A program made the position numbers and the translations under genes. DNA of 63,666 bases, filler included, from Basidiobolus meristosporus CBS 931.73 (Eukaryota; Fungi; Basidiobolomycota), in assembly GCA_002104905.1 (NCBI GenBank). It is 5 parts of 5 records of this genome, joined end to end, with 100 filler letters (N's around TTAATTAATTAA, not from the genome) between each part and the next. Parts side by side here need not be neighbours in the genome. Positions count along the whole stretch, not along the records: positions 1 to 11,984 come from MCFE01001261.1; 4 more parts are not named here. One strand, 5' to 3'. How positions within the stretch are numbered: the first letter of the stretch is position 1; every line of letters begins with the position of its first letter. Below, piece by piece: positions 1-11,984 of the stretch. Below the pieces are notes generated by a model. That model was given only the letters and a program-made list of their open reading frames with translations. It was not told the DNA's origin and ran no database searches.

Positions 1-2522
1 AGCTTGGGTTTTTCTGACTGCAGAATAAATTCAGCAAACTTCTTGACTTCAGGATCTCCAAGTATAGTTCTCCAGCAGGAGCCAGGTGTTGTGTGGTGTG
101 TTCTCTTCCAGGCCTTAATCAGTGGGTTGTTGCAGTTGTGAAGTCTGAGGTATAATCTGGTTCTAAGGTAGAGAAGTCTGATCTTATAGGGCATAAACCC
201 AAAAGCACCAAGAATAGCATGTCTGTAGGGGCATTCAGGCAAATGAGGCACCAAGGAGGTAATGCACCATACTGCAAACTTGTCAAGCTTAGTGCAGTCT
301 CTAGAAGTAAGAGAGAGAAGTGGTAAGCCAAATTCCAGGACAGGGAAGACAAACTGCTTGAGTAGAAGGAGGCAGCTGGGAGCTGAAGTTGTAGGAGGAG
401 TAACAGCCAGTAGCTTGTGGAGTGCCTGTCTTGCCAGGATAATTCTCTTCTTCAGGTGTGCTCCAGAGTCTAGTCCAGTAGGAAGGAAAGGAAAGCCAAG
501 ATATGTAGCAGAAACCTGAGCAGGTAGAGTGGAGTTCTCCAAGTTGATGGGAGAGCCCAAAGGTACTGTCTTTGCAATGGAAAGCTGGAGATTATTCTTC
601 TGCAGATACTGGTGGATGGTCTGGGAGTCTTGTTGCACATTGGAGGAGGATATTCTGATGTCATCAGCAAAGAGAGTAACCAGGCAGTCAGCTGAGAGTC
701 TTGGGAAATCATTCAGGAAGATGGCAAACAGTATAGGACCAAGCACAGAGCCTTGAACCACTCCATTAGGAACTGAGAACACAGCTGATTGCTCACTTGG
801 GTGCAGAATTCTTGCTTGTGGATCCAGAAACAGAGACCTGACAAGGAGGGTGAGAGAGGTACTGGAGAAGCATTGCAACTTGGACCAAAGCAGATTTCTG
901 TCAACTGAATCAAAGGCCTTAGTAATATCAAACAGAACAGAGGGATACTTGCACTGGAGAGAGTGATCTTGGCTAAGTATGACTGCATATTCCAAGGAGA
1001 GGCCAGGAACAAAGCCAAACTGTGCAGGATGAAACTTGAGGGAGTCAGAGTAGAGCTCCTGAGCAAGCAGAAGCTCAAACACCTTTCTGCAGGTGGGCAG
1101 CAGAGATATTGGCCTGTAGGAGCTAGGATCCAGGTGCTTTCCTTTACCCTTGTACAGTGGCAGAACATTTGCAAAGGACCATTCCTCAGGAGTAGAAAGC
1201 TGGGCTGAGCATTGCTGAAACAGTGGAAGCAGAAGTGCAGACATGGCCTTGGTACTAGTCTTCAGAAGCTCATAGGAGATTGTGTCCACACCTGGAGCAG
1301 TAGAGTTGGGAAGCCTCTTGAGCACATTATGGATTCTCCTTTGATCAAGTGCAAGTGGGATGGGCAGAGTCTTGAAGTCAGGATGAAAGCCAGGAGTTGA
1401 GTACTGCTTTGTAGAGAAGAAGATGTTAGCCAGCTGTTCTGTTGAAGGTAACTTCCTGGAAGAGGGCCTCATTGCCCTGTAGAGTCTTGATACTGTTCTT
1501 GTTATAGAGTTGGAAGATTGCAGAGGCAAAGAACTCATAATATGATCCCAGAGCTGAGTATGCAGAGTGTGGTGAATTGCCTTGGAGTGGTGTATTGCTG
1601 TCAGGAGGAGTTTCTCTGTTTTTGGGTTAGGGAAACTCAGGTAGCTTTGTTGCAGGGCTGAAACAATGGATTCCCATTTTCTTGAGGTAACAGCAGTAGT
1701 CTTGCATGGCAGTGAGAGGGAGGCAGACACCAGAATCAGATGCTTCACAAAGAGCCAGGCATAGTTGAGATCATCTGGCAGAGAAAGTAGCAAACTGGCA
1801 AGCTTCAAGTAGTTCCCAAAGTCTTTCTTCTGATTCTTGGTAGCTTTGTGGGTGAGCACAGTAAGTTTTGGCAGCTTCTTCTTCACAACTGGTTGCATAG
1901 AAAGGGACCAGGCTGGGTGGTCAGAGGCTCTCAAGGATCCTAGCTCAGCTCCAGAGAATTGCTTAACTTCATTCACAAAGTAGAGGGCAGCAGCAGAAGG
2001 GCAGATCCAGTCAACACATCTTTTCTCAGATTGAGCACCTAGTGCTAGCAGATGGCTTTCTCTCAGGAAGTTCAGTAGGAATGTAGACCTTGGCTTCATT
2101 CTTGCAGTCAGAGTAGTCTTGTTCTCAGGATGGGGAATGTTGAGATCTCCAAGCAAGATAACAGGTGTTGATATAGATTGCTGGTATTGCTGAACTTTCT
2201 GGCATATAACTTGCACTTCCTGAAGGGCAAGACTTGGAGGCAGATAGCAGAGCACCAGACTGATAGTTGGCAACTGGAGAGCAGCACAGTAAGGGGAGTA
2301 AAGAGGAACACAGAGCTGAGGAGTATTGATGGTAGAAGAGATGAAGCAGATAGAGGAGGTATTCTTTGTTCTAGGAGTAGAAAAGCAATATAGATTAGTC
2401 AAAAGTATAGAGGGTAGCTGGACATCAATCAAACACAGGAGGGAAAATCTTGAAAGAAGTCTCTCTAGAGTTGGTCTTGATGGCTGTATGCTGTTGCAGT
2501 TAAGCAACAGAACTTCAGGTAG
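1..2522 (-). CDS. ORF2 of LINE A1: APE endonuclease + reverse transcriptase, no start codon, open to window edge
   Basis: Manual translation: LPEVLLLNCNSI...LIDVQ...CYLPP...GDLNIPHP...RCVDW...SDHP, then RT motifs matching copy A2 (YRPISLLP, FDITKAFDSV, GVVQGSVLGP, FADD). Absent from the ORF track, probably because it has no stop inside the window. Confidence 0.88.
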
Positions 2523-4031
2523 TCAGGCAGAGGTTGTAGCTTCTTCAGAGGCAGCATTGACAATGTGACCTGCAGAGTCCCAGAGCTCTTCAAATGGTGC
2601 ATCACTTAAGTCAGCAAGGAGGGAAATGGCATGGTTCTTGAGGAAGTATGCCACATCATAGGAGGGGGCTTGTCTCTTGATGGCAGCAAAGAAAGACAGA
2701 ATGGCAACATGGGCTGGAGGCTTGTTGAACAGTAGAGAGTCAGAGGATTCAGATTCTTCAGGCACTATCTTGAAGTCAGTTTTCAGCCAGTTAAGGTTCT
2801 TCTCCACAAAGGCAACAAATGGGTCAGCAATGTTTTGGTCTAGGATAACCTCCAGAATCTTCCCTTTTCTCCAGGCCAGGTTGACAATTCTTGAGAGCTG
2901 AATATTGCATGCCTTGAGTGCTTTCCTGATGTTGGAAATGGGAGTCCAGGGAACTTGCTTCAAGTACACCACAGTCCAGGTAGAAGCTGGTGGTAGGTTT
3001 GCTGGGGGCTTGTAAGTCCTTCTGTGTTGCAATGGAGCTGCAGTAGTCAGATTGGAGTCCACATTCTCAGTAGAGGGTTTTCTTGATGTGTCTTGCTGAA
3101 TGGTACTGGAGCTGGATGTGCTGATAATTCTTGCTAGAACCTTGCCTGCATAAGTCTGAGGTATAGCTGAGGTGACTGTAGAGGTGGTGGCAGCTGGTGC
3201 AGGTGGAGAGGCAGAAACTGAAGCAGGAACTGAGGTCACCTGGGAGAAGGCAGTAGAAGCAGGTTTTCTGGGAGGAACAGAGTTCACTATCCAGTTGTTC
3301 TGTAAAACACTGGAGTAGCTTTTCTGTGGAACAGGATCTTGCTCTTGAACAGGAACAGAAGCAGGAGGCTGGGGCTGAGCAGTAGTGGTAAGGCAGTGGC
3401 ACTCCAAGGAAGCTTTTTGCAAGGCATCTCTGGCAGTTTTCAGGGCAGTATTGGCTTCATTCTTGAGCTTCTTGCATTGGGCATCCAGTCTCTTGTTTTC
3501 AATAGCCAGGGCAGTATTGGCAGCCTCTAAATCAGCAATTCTCTTCTCAATTGCAAGGAATCTCTGAAGAAATGCATCAGTAGAAGTGCTGGCATCTGGG
3601 AGAGCAGTGGCAGGAATAGAGTCCATTGACAGTGGGCTTCTTGGAGGCAAGGAAAGTGGACTGGCAGATTCAGGCACAAAAGGAGATATCCTGGCAGGAG
3701 GAGAAGGAGTATCCAAGGCAGTAACAGAGGCAATTCTTGTTGGTGAAGCAGCAGCAGGGGAGGCAAGCCTGTTCAGAAACTGGGCAGGAGAGAGTGCTTG
3801 AGGAGAGGGAGTCTTCAGCTTGCCAAGCATGTCTTCCATCAGAGTGATACCAATATTCCTGGTGCATTTGCAGAGAAAAGTAAGCTTCCTGAGTCTGCCA
3901 GCTCTTCCATTCCTTCTGATAGTTCCTTTGTTTCCACAGTTGGGGCAAGAAATCTTCTTGACAGACTTGTCAAAGCAATCAAGAACCTTCCTTTCAGGTG
4001 TAGTGGGCTCCTGTTGAGGTTTTGGTGGCAT
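2523..4031 (-). CDS. ORF1 (gag-like) of LINE A1: N-terminal CxxC zinc ribbon, coiled coil, C-terminal conserved domain
   Basis: 511-aa track ORF, first ATG at 4031 (MPPKP). Contains CPNCG...FLCKC, heptad region LAIEKRIADLEAANTAL, and a C-terminal domain homologous to ORF1 of family B. Confidence 0.85.
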   Translation of the reverse strand: MPPKPQQEPTTPERKVLDCFDKSVKKISCPNCGNKGTIRRNGRAGRLRKLTFLCKCTRNIGITLMEDMLGKLKTPSPQALSPAQFLNRLASPAAASPTRIASVTALDTPSPPARISPFVPESASPLSLPPRSPLSMDSIPATALPDASTSTDAFLQRFLAIEKRIADLEAANTALAIENKRLDAQCKKLKNEANTALKTARDALQKASLECHCLTTTAQPQPPASVPVQEQDPVPQKSYSSVLQNNWIVNSVPPRKPASTAFSQVTSVPASVSASPPAPAATTSTVTSAIPQTYAGKVLARIISTSSSSTIQQDTSRKPSTENVDSNLTTAAPLQHRRTYKPPANLPPASTWTVVYLKQVPWTPISNIRKALKACNIQLSRIVNLAWRKGKILEVILDQNIADPFVAFVEKNLNWLKTDFKIVPEESESSDSLLFNKPPAHVAILSFFAAIKRQAPSYDVAYFLKNHAISLLADLSDAPFEELWDSAGHIVNAASEEATTSA

Positions 4032-4100
4032 ATCCAGAGTTTCAGCTTCAAATTTCAATTTTTGAGATTTTTGGGTGATTTTTGATGGGCGGGATCAAAA

Positions 4101-4114
4101 TTAGGGTTAGGGTT
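4101..4114 (+). repeat. Interstitial telomeric repeat (TTAGGG)2TT at element junction
   Basis: ttagggttagggtt read directly at 4101-4114, abutting the 5' end of A1. Confidence 0.9.
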
Positions 4115-4311
4115 GCGCGCTGTGACTGCTTTTACGATCGCAAGGTCAGACCTAGGAAATAAATAGTAGTGATTAATGATGATGATGAGTCAGATCATCA
4201 AAAATCAATGTGATAATTAAAGGTTAGGGGAGGGAAAGTCACCAAGTTGGTGAAATCTTTATTTGAGTTAAGAACTAATCTAAGTACAAATAAAGAAGCC
4301 AATTAAGAGGT

Positions 4312-7162
4312 CTAGAACCTCTCTAATAAGTAATCTAATTTATGTTTTGTTTCATCTCTAATGTTTGTTTCAATAAAGTAAAGCTCATCAGGGGTAAATA
4401 TAAAATTCAGGGGTTTTGGGGGAAGTACAAATTGTAGATGTTTCTGATCAATATAATCCAAGACTGGAACCCAGCCTGGGATTAGGTGTAGTAGGAAAGG
4501 TGTGTGGACTTGTAAGTAGCTCTGCCACATAGATCTTAGATGGTCCTGAGCCAGTAGTCTTGGTTTCTCAGCTTTTTGAAGTTTTGAAGCAAGCTCTGTT
4601 ACTACAGCAGAGCCAACCAGGGTGTGCCAGCAAGAAGATTTCAGGGAGGAGTTAGATTGAAGCCATTGTTTGATGGAGGGGTTATGTGATTTCTGAAGTT
4701 TGACTAGGAAGGAAGCACGGAGATAGATCATTCGGATTTGGTATGGGTAGAACCCAAAGGCTCCATTAGTTGCATGGATATAGGGAGATACTGGAAGATA
4801 AGGTACCAAGGATCTGATACACTGATGGAGAAATTTATCCAGGCGGTGAAGTTCTCTGGAGGTTAGGGGTATAATGTGGAGACCAAATTCAAGTACTGGC
4901 AGCACATACTGCTTCAGAAGTATAGGGATCTTTTGAATTGGAGTGTCTGGAGTGACTACTACCAGAAGCTTTTTGAGAGCCTGTTGGGCAAGACGGATCC
5001 TATTATTCAGGTGGAGCTTTGAGTCAATCCCATGTTGACAAAATGGCAGACCTAGATATATTGCAGTTTGTTGTGGCAGAATGCTAGTGTTCTGTATAGT
5101 TGTAGTGCATCCAATTGGGACTGTCTTGGAAATTGAGAGTGAGAGGTTGTTGGCAGCCAAGTACTTCTCAATGATGGCAGTGTCTGCTATGGGATTAGGA
5201 GTAGCAATCTTGATATCATCCGCATAGAGAGTTAGTAGTGGATAGGGAGAGTCTGGTGAGGGGCCTTTTGGAAATAAAGGAAAGTCATGTAGGAATATCA
5301 CAAATAGTAAGGGACCTAGTACAGATCCTTGGACTACTCCATTTGGAACCTCATAAGTCTCTGATGTACAACTTGGATGCAAAATTTTGGCTGAGTTCTC
5401 ACAAAATAGAGAACGTACAAGAAGGGTCATTGGTAGTGTGGTAACTGCTAATAGCTTTCTCCAAAGCAGAGCTCTGTCCACAGAGTCAAAGGCTTTAGTA
5501 ATGTCAAACAGAATGGTTGGCAATGAGAATTGAAGTGAATGATCATGGCTTAGCACTACAGCCATATCCAAGGAGAGTTTGGGCAAGAAGCCAAACTGAG
5601 AAGGATGGAATGGATATAGTTGAGATTGCAAGGATCTTGCTATTATAAGCTCAAAGATTTTCCGGCAGGTTGGTAGGAGTGAAACTGGCCGGTAAGAACC
5701 TGGGAGTGAGTGTTTCCCCTTCCCTTTGTATAAGGGTATTACATTTGCCTGTGACCAGGCCTTTGGGGTAGTCAATTGTTGGGCACAGATAGAGTAGAAT
5801 GGGAGAAGTAAGTGACTCATTTTGGAGTAGCACACCCGGAGTAGATCGTAGGTAATCAAGTCATGTCCAGGTGCAGTATTTGCAGGAAGCTTCTTTAAAA
5901 TTTTCTCCAGAAGCTTTGCTGAAACCACAAATTGGAGATGTTGGACTGCTAGATATGTTACCAGTATGGTAGAAAGGAGGAGTGGGATGCACGGTTGAAT
6001 CAAAGAATATAGGGGCCAGTTTGTCTGGTGATGGTATACTCCTTGCTTGGGGTCTCATGGCTTTGTATACTCTTGATATGGACCTTGTGGTGGCATTCAT
6101 ATTTACTAAGGGCAAGGTATCCATGATATGAGCCCATAATCTAGTATGCTCAGTGATCTGTAGTGACTTGGAGTAGGAGATTGCGCTTTCCAGGAGGTTC
6201 TGTGTTTTTGGGTTAGGGAAACATAGGTAGCTGGAATTTAAGGCAGAAATGATGGATTTCCATTTAAGTTGGTTTGCAGATGGCTTTTGGTAGGACTTGG
6301 TGGGCAGGGCCAGACAGCCAGTGATTATGATGAAATGCTGGTAAAATAGCCATAATGCATTTATATCATCACAAATCCATGCAGGTAAGCTGGGAAATGC
6401 ATATTCTGTAAGCAAGGATAGGTAGTTGGCAAAGTCCTGTGTCTGTGATACTGAAGCTTTGGCTGGCAGGATTGTAAATGGCTGAAGAAGGGTGCCAATT
6501 GGTAGGGTTTTTCTGGCAGAAATGATAATATGTATTGGCTTGTGATCAGATTTCTCTAGTGAACCACAGCTGATATCCTCTGGAATGCTTGTAACCTGGT
6601 GGATGTACTGTAAGGCAGCTGGAGTAGCTGTTACCCAGTCAACACAACGTTGAGCTTGCTGAGTGTTTACAGTGACCAGATGGTTTTGTCGGAGGAACTT
6701 TGTAAAGTGCTCCTCTCGGGTTCTAAGTCTGGATGAAATAGTGGTGATATTTTCAGGGTGGGGAATATTTATATCTCCCACTACCATACAAGGGATTGAT
6801 GAGCTGTTAATGAATTCTGATGTGGCCAAGAAAATTGCCAGTGTTATGGAGTTAGACAGAGATGGAGGGAGATAGATAATAATGGCTACTATAGTTGGAA
6901 GTGTTAGAGCATAGCAGTAATACTCATAGATGATGGATACATTTGCTGAGGGTGCAAGCTTAGAAGATGAAAGAGCAACAAGTGCCATTGAGTGAGCTGG
7001 AAATTTTGGGTGAGCAGATGAATATGCATTCAGTCTAGAGGGAAGTTTTGGCAACTTAACATCAATTAGTAGGAGCAAGGAATATTCCTTTTTCAGTAAG
7101 TTTTCTAATTCAGCTACAGTTGGAGTGATGGAGTTGCAATTGAGTAAGAGTATGTTCTGTAG
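4312..7162 (-). pseudogene. ORF2 of LINE B: APE + RT, one frameshift near 5900-5960
   Basis: LQNILLLNCNSI...LIDVK...IYLPP...GDINIPHP...RCVDW...SDHK (7162-5861 frame) and RT motifs YRPVSLLP, FDITKAFDSV, GVVQGSVLGP, YADD (6003-4312 frame). The frameshift may be a lesion or a sequencing error. Confidence 0.85.
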
Positions 7163-8798
7163 TCAGGCAGACTCTGAGGTTGCCTGTTCCTGCTGAAACT
7201 CTTGCACTGCCCTTTGTAAATTTCCAGAATTATTCCACAACTCTTCAAATGGAGCTTGCGTAATGTCTTTCAGGATTCTAATTGCTTCCTCTTTCAAGAA
7301 GTAGGCCACATCATAGGTTGGAGCCTGTTTCTTAATGGCAGCAAAGAAAGCCATAATTGCCATGTGAGCTGGGGGCTTGTTGAATATTCCTGGCTCAGTG
7401 TCCATTGACTCTGGTGGAATGATTGTGAATTTGGTAGGCACCCAGTTTAGATTTTTTGCCAGATACTTAGTCAATGCAGTGGAGAAGTTTCTGTCTACAA
7501 TCATTTCTAGGATCTTTCCTCTTCTCCAAGCTAGGTTAACAATTTTTGAAGTGTCAATATTTAGAGAGCGGAATGTATGTCTGATGTTTGATATAGTAGT
7601 CCATGGAACATTGGCAAAGTATAGCAAGGACCAATTCTGGAGCTGAGGTAAGTTTGCTGGAGGCTTATAGGTAGACTTCCTGGCAGGTTGTGTGGTAGGC
7701 TTTAGTGTTTCCAAGGTAGCAAGTTGTGGTTGAGACTTTTTGGAATTACGTATGACTTTGGAAAGAATTCTGCCAGCAACTGTGTCAGGAATGTTAGTAC
7801 TCATTGATGGTGCAGGGCCTGGCTCCTGGTACTGCTTTTGTAGAATACTTGAGTATGTCTCTTTTTGTTTTCCTTTATCCAATGTGCTATGCCTTGGAAT
7901 GGGATTTTGGGGAATAGAGACTTCAGGTATCAACTCTGGGGTCTGGTGATTGTCCAACATTGTTGCTTGAGCTTCCAGCTTTTCCTCTAAGATTTGAACT
8001 CTCTGCTTAAGCTCATCATTTGACGCTATAAGTGTTGCATTGTTTGGAGCCAGGTCAGGTGTTGAGTTATGAAGGCAGGTTGAGCAGCGTTCTAACTCCT
8101 TTGTTTGGTCATCCAACTTTTCTTCTAAGGTTTGAACCCTCAATTTGAGTGCACCATTTGAGGTTAGAAGCTCCAAGTTATCAGCCTGCAACTTCTTTAG
8201 ATCCCTAAATATCTCAAATATCTGTGCCTGCAAGTCTTTAGCAGTGATATTTCTGATGGGTACTATTTCCTCTAGGAGTTCTTCTTGAGCCAGGTGAGCA
8301 TTGGGACTTGAGCACTCTACTGAAGGAGTTGCTGGAATTTCCTCAATGTCTGACAAAACTTCTTCACTTGCAGCATCAGTTGTATGATTATCCTGAGTAG
8401 CAGCAACAACCTCAAGTTCACAAGGACCAGTTGAAGTAAAACATTCTTGGGTGGGACTATCTCAAGAGGCTTGGGTGGGACTTTTGCTTTGAATGGTGAG
8501 GTACTAGGATCAAGAATTGGGACTGGGACAGAAGCTATGGTGTCTATTTCAGCAGCAGTTGCTGTAGAGCTACTGGGGCTCTGACTGGCTGGTTTTTTGG
8601 TCTTTGCCTTCACTCCTGCTACCAACTGGTCAAGACCACAAATCTTTGATTAACCTTATTCTTGCCAGCACGGCCATTGAGCTTCCATTTGCCTCTGATA
8701 CCACAGGCAGTGCAGTCAAGTTTTGAATACCATCTTCTGAAGAGAGTCAGATCCTCTTTTTCCTCACTGGTAAGAATCACCTTACTTTGTGGAGGCAT
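7163..8798 (-). pseudogene. ORF1 of LINE B, two frameshifts in the 5' part
   Basis: ATG at 8798 (MPPQSK...CTACGIRGKWKLNGRAG), continuing in track ORFs 8317-8625 and 7163-8356. The C-terminal domain is clearly homologous to A1 ORF1 (YKPPANLP, VNLAWRxGKILE, FNKPPAH, APxYDVAYFLK). Confidence 0.8.
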
Positions 8799-8820
8799 AT
8801 TTCCAATTTCCTAACAAAAT

Positions 8821-10885
8821 TTAGGGGGGAGACAGTCACCAACAGGTGAAATCTTTATTTCAGTTGAAACAAAGAAGCCAGCGCTACTGTTGTAGCTTTG
8901 ATACAAGAGTGTGTAGCTGAGGGGAATTTGTAGGTAAGTTAATAAGAAGTGATGATAGTTCTTCAGTGCTCAAGACACTGTTCAGTGGGAAGGGGGGTAG
9001 CAAGAGAGGTAAGAATGACTTGTGAACAACATTAATGAGGGGAATGTGATAAGGATTGATATTCATCATAAAGGGAGTGTGCTGCTGCAGATATTGCTGC
9101 CAAAGGTCTGTCAAGTACTTCAGGTAGGCCAGCTTGGGTTTTTCTGACTGCAGAATATAGTGAGCAAACTTCTTGACTTCAGGATCTCCAAGTATAGTTC
9201 TCCAGCAGGAGTCAGGTGTAGTGTGGTGTGTTCTCTTCCAGGCCTTAATCAGTGGGTTGTTGCAGTTGTGAAGTCTGAGGTATAATCTGGTTCTAAGGTA
9301 GAGAAGTCTGATCTTATAGGGCATAAACCCAAAAGCACCAAGAATAGCATGTCTGTAGGGGCATTCAGGCAAATGAGGCACCAAGGAGGTAATGCACCAT
9401 ACTGCAAACTTGTCAAGCTTAGTGCAGTCTCTAGAAGTAAGAGAGAGAAGTGGTAAGCCAAATTCCAGGACAGGGAAGACAAACTGCTTGAGTAGAAGGA
9501 GGCAGCTGGGAGCTGAAGTTGTAGGAGGAGTAACAGCCAGTAGCTTGTGGAGTGCCTGTCTTGCAAGGATAATTCTCTTCTTCAGGTGTGCTCCAGAGTC
9601 TAGTCCAGTAGGAAGGAAAGGAAAGCCAAGATATGTAGCAGAAACCTGAGCAGGTAGAGTGGAGTTCTCCAAGTTGATGGGAGAGCCCAAAGGTACTGTC
9701 TTTGCAATGGAAAGCTGGAGATTATTCTTCTGCAGATACTGGTGGATGGTCTGGGAGTCTTGTTGCACATTGGAGGAGGATATTCTGATGTCATCAGCAA
9801 AGAGAGTAACCAGGCAGTCAGCTGAGAGTCTTGGGAAATCATTCAGGAAGATGGCAAACAGTATAGGACCAAGCACAGAGCCTTGAACCACTCCATTAGG
9901 AACTGAGAACACAGCTGATTGCTCACTTGGGTGCAGAATTCTTGCTTGTGGATCCAGAAACAGAGACCTGACAAGGAGGGTGAGAGAGGTACTGGAGAAG
10001 CATTGCAACTTGGACCAAAGCAGATTTCTGTCAACTGAATCAAAGGCCTTAGTAATATCAAACAGAACAGAGGGATACTTGCACTGGAGAGAGTGATCTT
10101 GGCTAAGTATGACTGCATATTCCAAGGAGAGGCCAGGAACAAAGCCAAACTGTGCAGGATGAAACTTGAGGGAGTCAGAGTAGAGCTCCTGAGCAAGCAG
10201 AAGCTCAAACACCTTTCTGCAGGTGGGCAGCAGAGATATTGGCCTGTAGGAGCTAGGATCCAGGTGCTTTCCTTTACCCTTGTACAGTGGCAGACATTTG
10301 CAAAGGACCATTCCTCAGGAGTAGAAAGCTGGGCTGAGCATTGCTGAAACAGTGGAAGCAGAAGTGCAGACATGGCCTTGGTACTAGTCTTCAGAAGCTC
10401 ATAGGAGATTGTGTCCACACCTGGAGCAGTAGAGTTGGGAAGCCTCTTGAGCACATTATGGATTCTCCTTTGATCAAGTGCAAGTGGGATGGGCAGAGTC
10501 TTGAAGTCAGGATGAAAGCCAGGAGTTGAGTACTGCTTTGTAGAGAAGAAGATGTTAGCCAGCTGTTCTGTTGAAGGTAACTTCCTGCAAGAGGGCCTCA
10601 TTGCCCTGTAGAGTCTTGATACTGTTCTTGTTATAGAGTTGGAAGATTGCAGAGGCAAAGAACTCATAATATGATCCCAGAGCTGAGTATGCAGAGTGTG
10701 GTGAATTGCCTTGGAGTGGTGTATTGCTGTCAGGAGGAGTTTCTCTGTTTTTGGGTTAGGGAAACTCAGGTAGCTTTGTTGCAGGGCTGAAACAATGGAT
10801 TCCCATTTTCTTGAGGTAACAGCAGTAGTCTTGCATGGCAGTGAGAGGGAGGCAGACACCAGAATCAGATGCTTCACAAAGAGCC
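8821..10885 (-). mobile_element. LINE family A copy A2, 5'-truncated, complete 3' end
   Basis: 9131-10885 matches 1-1756 except a few substitutions and a 1-nt deletion near 10294 that splits the RT. Breaks off at ...GAGCC, followed by TTAGGG. Confidence 0.93.
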
Positions 10886-10899
10886 TTAGGGTTAGGGTT
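10886..10899 (+). repeat. Interstitial telomeric repeat (TTAGGG)2TT capping truncated A2
   Basis: ttagggttagggtt read directly. Confidence 0.9.
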
Positions 10900-11530
10900 C
10901 TAGTGCTTTATTGGGAAATTTGCACAAGAAGTGCAATCTTGAAATATGACAAAGTCATATGAGTATAGCAACTATTATAAAATGAAAACTACTTTGCCAG
11001 TAAAAGGGGTGAAGGAAACTGTAAAAGCTATAAAGGAAAAGCTGGGGACACAAGAAATTTACAGTACCATTCATTGCCCTACACTGCAAGTAAGCTCAAG
11101 GAACATATGGGGAAGCTTTACCAGACTGAACCAAAGAATCTTGCTTCAGATCACAAAGGAAACAATGAGGACTGCAGAAGCTTTAAAGGAAACCAAGGTT
11201 CCCATAGTGATGGCTGACTGGGAAATCTACAGAAGCATTCACTGATCCAAAAGAAGGAGGCAAGAGGCTAGAGTAATGTCATCAAAAGAAAATGAACCAT
11301 AAGCTGAAGTTCAGGCACATGCATCAAGTCCAATCATGCCAAAGACAGCTGCAGAAGCTTGAAAGGAAACAGAAAGTCTCCATTGGGGTGACTCCAGGGG
11401 AAATCCACAGTCAGCCCTTTACATCACCAGAGGTGGGCAGTGTCTGAAAGAAAGGAAGGAAAGAGCAAGAGAAAAGGGAAGGAGAGAAGGAAAAAGGAAG
11501 GAGAGAAGAATGGGGTGGGTGGGTGGGAAA
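10900..11530. other. CpG-free subtelomeric segment without recognisable coding capacity (segment C)
   Basis: Stops in all minus frames checked. Weak ~180-bp internal periodicity, hairpins near 10920-10960, purine-rich tract 11446-11527. Confidence 0.45.
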
Positions 11531-11848
11531 TCTTATAGGTGAAGGATCTTGTTAAAGATCACATCACTAGGTTAGGGGAGATTGTTAGGGAAGGAGCATC
11601 AGGTCAGAAGACCCAATCTTATAGGTGAAGGATCTTGTTAAAGATCACATCACTAGGTTAGGGGAGATTGTTAGGGAAGGAGCATCAGGTCAGAAGACCC
11701 AATCTTATAGGTGAAGGATCTTGTTAAAGATCACATCACTAGGTTAGGGGAGATTGTTAGGGAAGGAGCATCAGGTCAGAAGACCCAATCTTATAGGTGA
11801 AGGATCTTGTTAAAGATCACATCACTAGGTTAGGGGAGATTGTTAGGG
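11531..11848 (+). repeat. 86-bp subtelomeric tandem repeat, ~3.7 identical copies, each with two TTAGGG hexamers
   Basis: Units start at 11531, 11617, 11703, 11789 (tcttataggtgaaggatc...). The last copy ends at its internal GTTAGGG. Confidence 0.95.
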
Positions 11849-11864
11849 GTTAGGGGGGGAGACA

Positions 11865-11984
11865 GGGTTAGGGTTAGGGTTAGGGTAGGGTTAGGGTTAG
11901 GGTTAGGGTTAGGGTAGGTTAGGGTTAGGGTTAGGGTTAGGGTTAGGGTTAGGGTTAGGGTTAGGGTTAGGGTTAGGGTTAGGG
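11865..11984 (+). repeat. Telomere (TTAGGG)n, ~20 units, at contig end
   Basis: Pure TTAGGG array with two proximal variants (TAGGG, TAGG). The G-rich strand runs 5'->3' toward the end. Confidence 0.97.

Follow-up and report, generated by a model that had tools for sequence, protein, structure and literature searches.

Positions 1 to 11984 of a 63,666-nucleotide stretch of the Basidiobolus meristosporus CBS 931.73 genome (the whole stretch is called the window here) carry three copies from a family of long interspersed nuclear elements (LINEs) in which the first open reading frame (ORF1) ends in TGA and the second (ORF2) continues in the same frame from the very next codon. This piece was the one analysed, and all element features in it lie on the minus strand. 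We consider it probable, judging from the conservation of the junction, that the UGA is a programmed leaky stop at which type II readthrough yields an ORF1-ORF2 fusion in the style of Gag-Pol. The family is also specific to telomeric repeats and belongs to an endonuclease type that is new for telomeric elements in fungi.

The junction was initially annotated in element B, where ORF1 ends ...GAG TCT GCC TGA and the same frame runs on as CTA CAG AAC ATA CTC TTA CTC AAT TGC AAC; the sequence quoted at that time is the reverse complement of window positions 7139 to 7180, and the TGA lies at 7165-7163. The initial annotation held that thirteen nucleotides are identical between families A and B while the neighboring codons differ and the N-terminal halves of ORF1 barely align, and all of this was borne out. 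The 13-mer TCT GCC TGA CTA C lies at 7159-7171 in family B and at 2519-2531 in family A, where the stop is at 2525-2523. These are the only two occurrences of TCTGCCTGACTAC in the piece, each at an ORF1/ORF2 boundary, and shuffles gave 0.03 matches on average with one mismatch permitted. The 13-mer runs from the Ser-Ala codon pair that closes ORF1 through the TGA to the fourth base of ORF2. The end of ORF1 reads HIVNAASEEATTSA in family A but NLQRAVQEFQQEQATSESA in family B, with an indel of five residues between them, and downstream of the stop the synonymous codons differ. Overall, the ORF1 proteins of A and B are 42% identical, with the identity concentrated in the C-terminal 170 residues, and the nucleotide identity is about 66 to 67% where BLAST aligns the two and 52% across the codon alignment. 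Identical runs of 11 to 20 nt also occur elsewhere in the A/B alignment, at conserved protein motifs, so the 13-nt identity alone is not decisive. The unusual aspect of this run is that it spans a stop codon within an otherwise poorly conserved tail.

A search with ORF1 gave seven homologues and a search with ORF2 gave one further lineage, and the corresponding contigs were retrieved. Nine lineages were compared (A, B, L001, L002, L004, L006, L007, L008, and L010), with pairwise identities of 34 to 69% in ORF1 and 32 to 81% in ORF2. The ORF1 stop is TGA in all nine, never TAA or TAG, and the following codon is always CTN for leucine (CTA in five lineages, CTT in two, and CTC in two). ORF2 likewise lies in the ORF1 frame with zero spacer in every lineage. 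Ahead of the stop, the tail of ORF1 differs between lineages in sequence and in length, the latter in whole codons only, through in-frame indels of 4 to 5 codons. ORF1 ends in Ser-Ala in eight of the nine lineages, the other being L007 with TCT ATC, and the Ser-Ala codons themselves vary (TCT GCC, ACT GCC, TCT GCT, and TCA GCA), being kept mainly at the protein level. On the aligned sequences, the family-wide invariant core is thus the 5-nt TGACT and not the whole 13-mer. A further candidate member, L018, was rejected, as it proved to be an unrelated zinc-finger gene beside a clamp-loader-like gene, and a scan of Joint Genome Institute metagenomes for further junctions gave nothing useful. Within the close family, no relative with a single ORF, in which a sense codon replaces the stop, was found among ORF2 homologues of up to 1,470 residues. 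The contig of L010, from the Logan assemblies, ends in an Illumina adapter (AGATCGGAAGAGC..., L010:3825-3852), and its 3' untranslated region (UTR) is therefore shortened by an assembly artifact.

Synonymous sites are saturated across this set. At amino-acid-invariant columns, the third base is invariant at 3 of 40 two-fold sites (7.5%) and at 1 of 83 four-fold-or-more sites, and therefore a stop under no UGA-specific constraint should have drifted to TAA in some lineages. A single transition would preserve a stop, yet TGA is kept in 9/9. Similarly, C at +4 and T at +5 are invariant, while elsewhere only 6 of 25 invariant leucine columns are all-CTN, and frame 0 with zero spacer has persisted despite the indels in the ORF1 tail. 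The stop of ORF2 itself is TAG in five cases and TAA in one, in varied contexts, and the contrast of 9/9 TGA in ORF1 with 0/6 in ORF2 gives a Fisher p of 2e-4 with shared ancestry ignored. Each of these patterns favors readthrough. They also uphold the earlier statement that the shared stop is no accidental nonsense mutation, given TGA-CTN in every lineage, and the tabulation of stop identity, +4 to +6 bases, and spacing that the initial annotation had proposed as a check returned TGA-CTN, frame 0, and no spacer throughout, with none of the random stops, random contexts, or variable spacing that would have spoken against it. Its further claim, of purifying selection on a recoding signal that predates the A/B split, is supported with two refinements: the core under selection across the nine lineages is TGACT only, and the recoding itself is what we infer. 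Nor is the stop a defect, because the family is active and abundant, with ORF2 intact at 923 to 960 codons in L002, L004, L010, L011, and L012, with two copies 99.5% identical, and with thousands of contigs from one run matching it.

The second line of evidence is the start of ORF2, which encodes an endonuclease followed by a reverse transcriptase (RT). The RT was recognized by Pfam RVT_1 (E values of 1e-21 to 1e-26) and by the RT of L1 ORF2p (E value of 3e-9). The endonuclease had no match in the PDB by sequence; its AlphaFold model is of the apurinic/apyrimidinic endonuclease (APE) fold, with a predicted local distance difference test (pLDDT) score above 85 across most of residues 1 to 210, and Foldseek placed the TRAS1 endonuclease at the top (E value of 4e-10), followed by the APE1, L1, and R1 endonucleases. 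The first strand of this predicted model comprises residues 3 to 8 after the stop (pLDDT of 92). Across the family, ORF2 begins with the consensus L-x-x-[LIF]-[LMF]-[LFY]-L-N-C-[NRH]-S, in which residue 8 is the conserved Asn of LNC[NRH]S and, by comparison with the L1 endonuclease, presumably the catalytic Asn. The first in-frame AUG of ORF2 is at codon 142, 59, 103, 139, 116, 59, and 71 in seven of the nine lineages, and an early AUG is present only in L006 (codon 2) and L001 (codon 5). In three lineages a near-cognate start is missing from the first six codons of ORF2, the first codon is never CUG, and a stop/start overlap of the UAAUG or AUGA kind is found in the ORF2 frame of none of the nine. 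With the fold predicted to begin at residue 3 and no conserved AUG, the model indicates that ORF2 cannot start internally, which again favors readthrough.

In the ORF1 protein, a CxxC...CxC zinc finger at the N terminus is followed by a coiled coil and, at the C terminus, by a conserved domain of ∼170 residues whose predicted fold is beta-alpha-beta-beta-alpha plus helices; the fold model has a pLDDT of 75, and its matches to RNA recognition motif (RRM)/ferredoxin-like folds are weak. A protein annotated in CBS 931.73 is near-identical to the C terminus of element A ORF1, and further homologues are annotated in Basidiobolus ranarum. The nearest proteins outside the family show at most 32% identity, in the RT region alone. 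With an APE-fold endonuclease and RT in ORF2, no long terminal repeats (LTRs), and variable 5' truncation, the elements are APE-type non-LTR retrotransposons.

Under the mechanism that we propose, the element would be transcribed as a single RNA, and most ribosomes would end at the UGA, releasing the ORF1 protein (ORF1p) with its zinc finger, coiled coil, and RRM-like domain. In the context of C at +4, U at +5, and often A at +6, corresponding to the type II UGA-CUA, a few ribosomes would decode the UGA by a near-cognate tRNA (Trp, Cys, or Arg) and stay in frame. The product would be an ORF1p-ORF2p fusion carrying endonuclease and reverse transcriptase, made at a low ratio as is gammaretroviral Gag-Pol. 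That readthrough occurs at all, its efficiency, the residue inserted, and the activity of the fusion as an enzyme are thus predictions of the model.

Readthrough is further favored because UGA-CUA is an experimentally established context for it. Type II (Beier-Grimm) signals, in which CUA or CGG comes after the UGA, include UGA-CUA between alphavirus nsP3 and nsP4 and UGA-CUAG in vertebrate OPRL1, OPRK1, AQP4, and MAPK10 (PMC4132726, PMC13517186). UGA-CUA alone gave 1.5% readthrough in HEK-293T cells, UGA with the CUA motif exceeds UAA or UAG, and C after any stop weakens termination (PMC4132726). Like these signals, the family has UGA as its sole stop, invariant C and U at +4 and +5, CUA in five of nine lineages, coding sequence downstream in frame, and a last sense codon that is often Ala, as in OPRL1 (GCA). 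It departs from them in that +6 varies (CUU or CUC in four lineages) and G at +7 is absent from all nine. Moreover, unlike the alphavirus signal, the junction has no conserved extended stem-loop, a feature of many type II signals though not of all, and the downstream part is an enzyme of 923 to 960 residues in place of a short extension.

Among retroelements, Gag-Pol readthrough is used by murine leukemia virus (MLV), at a UAG with a pseudoknot, and by Candida albicans Tca2, with a gag-UGA-pol arrangement (PMC13517186, PMC3956500). As in those elements, a nucleic-acid-binding structural protein and a polymerase share one frame with a single stop between them, and a low fusion ratio is expected. 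MLV and Tca2, however, are a retrovirus and an LTR element with a protease that cleaves the fusion, whereas the present elements are non-LTR and have neither protease nor pseudoknot. In certain plant LINEs of the L1 type, too, a single stop separates an ORF1 and an ORF2 that share a frame.

With an ORF1 profile as the query, a search of 1.84 billion representatives brought out a wider family with matching architecture, of which two contigs were readable. In L017, a GC-rich contig of soil-metagenome type, ORF1 ends CTT CTC TGA CTA G (L017:1968-1977), giving the full CUAG context, and ORF2 lies in that frame too, beyond a Pro/Ser-rich linker of ∼35 residues; the peptide upstream differs from that of the close family, and the first in-frame AUG is at codon 60, past the first endonuclease motif. 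This in-frame TGA CTA G in a distant relative favors readthrough, and because of it the in-frame UGA-CUA layout must either be old or have arisen more than once. In L016, the ATG of ORF2 overlaps the stop (AUGA, L016:1495-1498) in a different frame; the superfamily also includes, in this relative, a variant with classic stop/start coupling.

Several observations weigh against readthrough, and the coupling in L016 is one of them. The +6 base is not fixed (A in five lineages, U in two, and C in two), which leaves four lineages without canonical CUA, and the conservation statistics come from nine lineages with phylogenetic non-independence ignored. None of the RNA runs searched for the element carries it. 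RNAalifold predicted no conserved RNA structure after the stop, and single-sequence folding of the post-stop region gave z-scores of −2.3 to +1.2. A hairpin of 7 to 11 bp that starts 8 to 12 nt after the UGA is found in the A clade (window 2488-2511, L002, L004, and L006), with the form CUGUUGC-loop-GCAACAG and a G-C, G-U, A-U series in which L014 has the A-U variant. B, L007, and L008 lack the hairpin, and 69% of cells are paired compared with 64% in shuffles. We rejected this hairpin as a family-wide stimulator, as it is confined to the A clade and barely above shuffles; it may act as a stimulator in that lineage or simply follow from the codons for Leu-Leu-Leu-Asn-Cys-Asn-Ser. No suppressor tRNA gene was found in the window. 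The AUG at the second ORF2 codon of L006 also counts against readthrough, as does the precedent of the LINEs whose ORF2 translation has been studied, since an unconventional termination-reinitiation is proposed for human L1 and SART1 uses UAAUG coupling (PMC5972666). Another LINE, Zorro3, requires its ORF2 AUG (PMC1965478).

That precedent, the AUGA of L016, which is of the SART1 kind, and the early AUG codons of L006 and L001 all lend weight to the best of the alternatives, AUG-independent termination-reinitiation, in which ribosomes would stop at the UGA, restart at or next to the first codon of ORF2, and make a separate ORF2p, as proposed for human L1. The family shares with SART1, L1, and Zorro3 the need for a bicistronic LINE RNA to bring few ribosomes to ORF2. 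We nevertheless regard reinitiation as unlikely. In contrast to those three LINEs, the stop here sits in a conserved leaky context, ORF2 follows it directly and in frame, and no AUG overlaps it or lies close by; seven of the nine lineages lack an AUG before codon 59, three lack even a near-cognate codon among the first six, and none starts with CUG. In addition, UGA as the stop, the bases C and U at +4 and +5, and the common frame are all invariant, although reinitiation specifically requires none of them. A UGGGA resembling motif 1 of a termination upstream ribosome-binding site (TURBS) lies ∼55 nt upstream in six of the eight lineages first aligned and could be taken to assist reinitiation, but it is accounted for by the Trp-Asp/Glu codons that encode a conserved protein motif and is missing from B and L007, and we rejected it as a signal.

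It is also conceivable, though we judge it improbable, that the stop has no special role and was inherited by descent, with ORF2 expressed otherwise, for example from a separate transcript or by internal ribosome entry. The lineages do have a common ancestor, so the features they share may in part be historical, and B and the third copy in the window, A2, are dead. However, with so few two-fold sites still invariant, TGA should have drifted to TAA in some lineages if its G were neutral, the stops of ORF2 do vary, and a separate ORF2 message would need non-AUG initiation precisely at the junction. Decoding of the UGA by rule, as selenocysteine or under a reassigned code, can hardly be credited: UGA is the codon of selenocysteine and some early-diverging fungi have selenocysteine machinery, but an Rfam scan of the window returned no selenocysteine insertion sequence (SECIS) and no other family at E <= 1, the 3' UTR is ∼65 nt with two simple hairpins, and, with no other in-frame TGA in ∼1,400 codons per element and Trp encoded by TGG, the code is therefore the standard one.

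The surroundings of the copies, independent of how ORF2 is translated, identify the family as a telomere-repeat-specific LINE. The piece is a chromosome end, with a terminal telomere repeat at 11864-11984, reaching the right edge of the piece, that reads (TTAGGG)n on the plus strand and (CCCTAA)n on the strand of the elements. Three LINE copies, A2, B, and A, stand head to tail with their 5' ends pointing toward the telomere, adjacent copies being linked by one or two telomere repeats. Both A and A2 are preceded on the 5' side by CCCTAACCCTAA (at 4112-4101 and 10897-10886, respectively), and the elements have a fixed orientation in telomeric repeats. The 3' UTRs of ∼65 nt consist of two hairpins and a C-rich run followed by CCCTAA(CCCTAA), after which the flanks differ between contigs. 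This tail, which is present in A2, B, L001, L002, L004, L005, and L011 to L015, takes the place of poly(A). In one DNA run (2016), contigs cover element A thousands of times, with ∼15-fold more 3' than 5' sequence. Many joints connect variable 5'-truncation points of A with the 3' end, at 4222-4228, of an element upstream; TTAGGG fillers occur at these joints, with TAG and TAGGGTTAGGGTTAGG among the fillers. Among the variants listed for that run there were none at the ORF1/ORF2 junction.

The 3' UTR hairpins (window 8816-8883 and 4222-4311, and L001, L002, and L004) are formed by UCUUUGUUU/AAAUAAAGA around a variable loop and by UCACC-loop-GGUGA, in sequence that is too conserved to reveal covariation. 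They are probably the recognition signal for the RT, and reverse transcription could be primed by pairing of the CCCTAA 3' end with the TTAGGG strand. The longest invariant run across the eight lineages covering the site is not the junction but CCTAACCC, which lies inside ORF2 at the F-P-N-P codons near codon 300 (window 1624-1632, 6210-6218, and 10753-10761). In seven of the eight lineages the site reads CCCTAACCC, equal to 1.5 telomere repeats, and the third bases of its Pro and Asn codons are fixed despite the synonymous saturation. Either the CCCUAA tail or an invariant internal CCCUAACCC could pair with the end of the telomeric G strand and prime synthesis as the telomerase template does.

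Telomere-repeat LINEs are known from Bombyx as TRAS1 and SART1, and the nearest fungal examples are MoTeR, FoTeR, and Cnl1 (PMC12857005, PMC7265360). The present family resembles TRAS1 and SART1 in its head-to-tail arrays in telomeric repeats at a chromosome end and in having TRAS1 as the best structural match to its endonuclease; its CCCTAA tail in place of poly(A) sets it apart from known telomeric LINEs. The known fungal telomeric elements cluster in the CRE/SLACS clade, and the FoTeR and MoTeR members carry a restriction-like (REL) endonuclease domain (PMC12857005), unlike the N-terminal APE endonuclease and two ORFs found here. Since those fungal elements fall in the REL-endonuclease CRE clade (PMC12857005), the APE type makes this telomere-repeat-specific LINE family a kind new for fungi; the family was previously undescribed, and its host is an early-diverging fungus. 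Our literature search found no report of readthrough in a LINE or of a telomeric element in Basidiobolus; most subscription journals were outside its coverage, and absence is not proven.

Of the three copies in the window, A alone looks intact within its visible extent. Element A spans 4100-1 and is cut by the edge of the piece. Its 5' UTR feature (4032-4112) comprises the UTR proper at 4100-4032 and the CCCTAACCCTAA before it, its ORF1 (2526-4031, ATG at 4031-4029) is intact at 502 codons with zinc finger, coiled coil, and conserved C-terminal domain, and its ORF2 (1-2522) continues in the ORF1 frame without a stop for 840 codons, as far as the piece edge, with the endonuclease fold from residue 3. 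Element B (8820-4222) is a dead copy with one frameshift in each ORF. In its ORF1 (7166-8798, ATG at 8798-8796) the N-terminal zinc-finger piece is out of frame, the frameshift lying between 8661 and 8215, and the in-frame portion at 8356-7166 encodes the coiled coil and the conserved C-terminal domain. Its ORF2 (4312-7162), encoding APE endonuclease and RT, shares the ORF1 frame from the first post-stop codon, has a frameshift between 5927 and 5886, and ends with TAG at 4314-4312. The 3' UTR of B (4222-4311) has the two conserved hairpins and then the C-rich run ending CCCCTAACC. About 110 nt (4113-4221) separate this 3' end from the telomeric dimer preceding A. Outside the window, L001 is also damaged, with one in-frame stop at ORF2 codon 256 (near 2217-2219).

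Element A2 (8821-10885) is a 5'-truncated copy of family A, 99.5% identical to A and beginning at about ORF2 codon 255. Its ORF2 is split by a 1-nt indel (window 9843-10311), and its 3' end, ...CCCCCCTAA at 8821, adjoins the 5' end of B. On the telomere side of A2, inward of the terminal repeat, positions 11529-11848 hold 3.7 copies of an 86-nt tandem repeat with degenerate telomere-like motifs, and inward of it ∼600 nt of noncoding sequence end in ...AATAAAGCACTAGAA and CCCTAACCCTAA. This region (10898-11848) may be a different, nonautonomous telomeric element.

Taken more broadly and more tentatively, one possible picture is of a fungal APE-type LINE superfamily that makes its RT as a fusion through UGA-CU(A), with lineages switching between this and AUGA coupling, and that includes a telomere-only family in which the CCCUAA tail or CCCUAACCC possibly does the priming; we would place rather less confidence in this whole than in readthrough at the junction. 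The translation of ORF2 from a bicistronic LINE RNA is a long-standing and partly solved question, and the cases studied suggest unusual reinitiation. The Basidiobolus family presents a simple alternative, in which a single conserved UGA stands in a known leaky context and ORF2 adjoins it directly, without an AUG, the enzyme beginning three residues on. If readthrough is true, this would be the first LINE family with readthrough as a demonstrated route to ORF2, a non-LTR element could use the Gag-Pol fusion strategy of retroviruses, and the physical link thereby made between ORF2p and the ORF1p trimer would have a bearing on cis-preference. The family is relevant to telomere biology and also to the annotation of Basidiobolus genomes, which at present splits or misses the fused frame.

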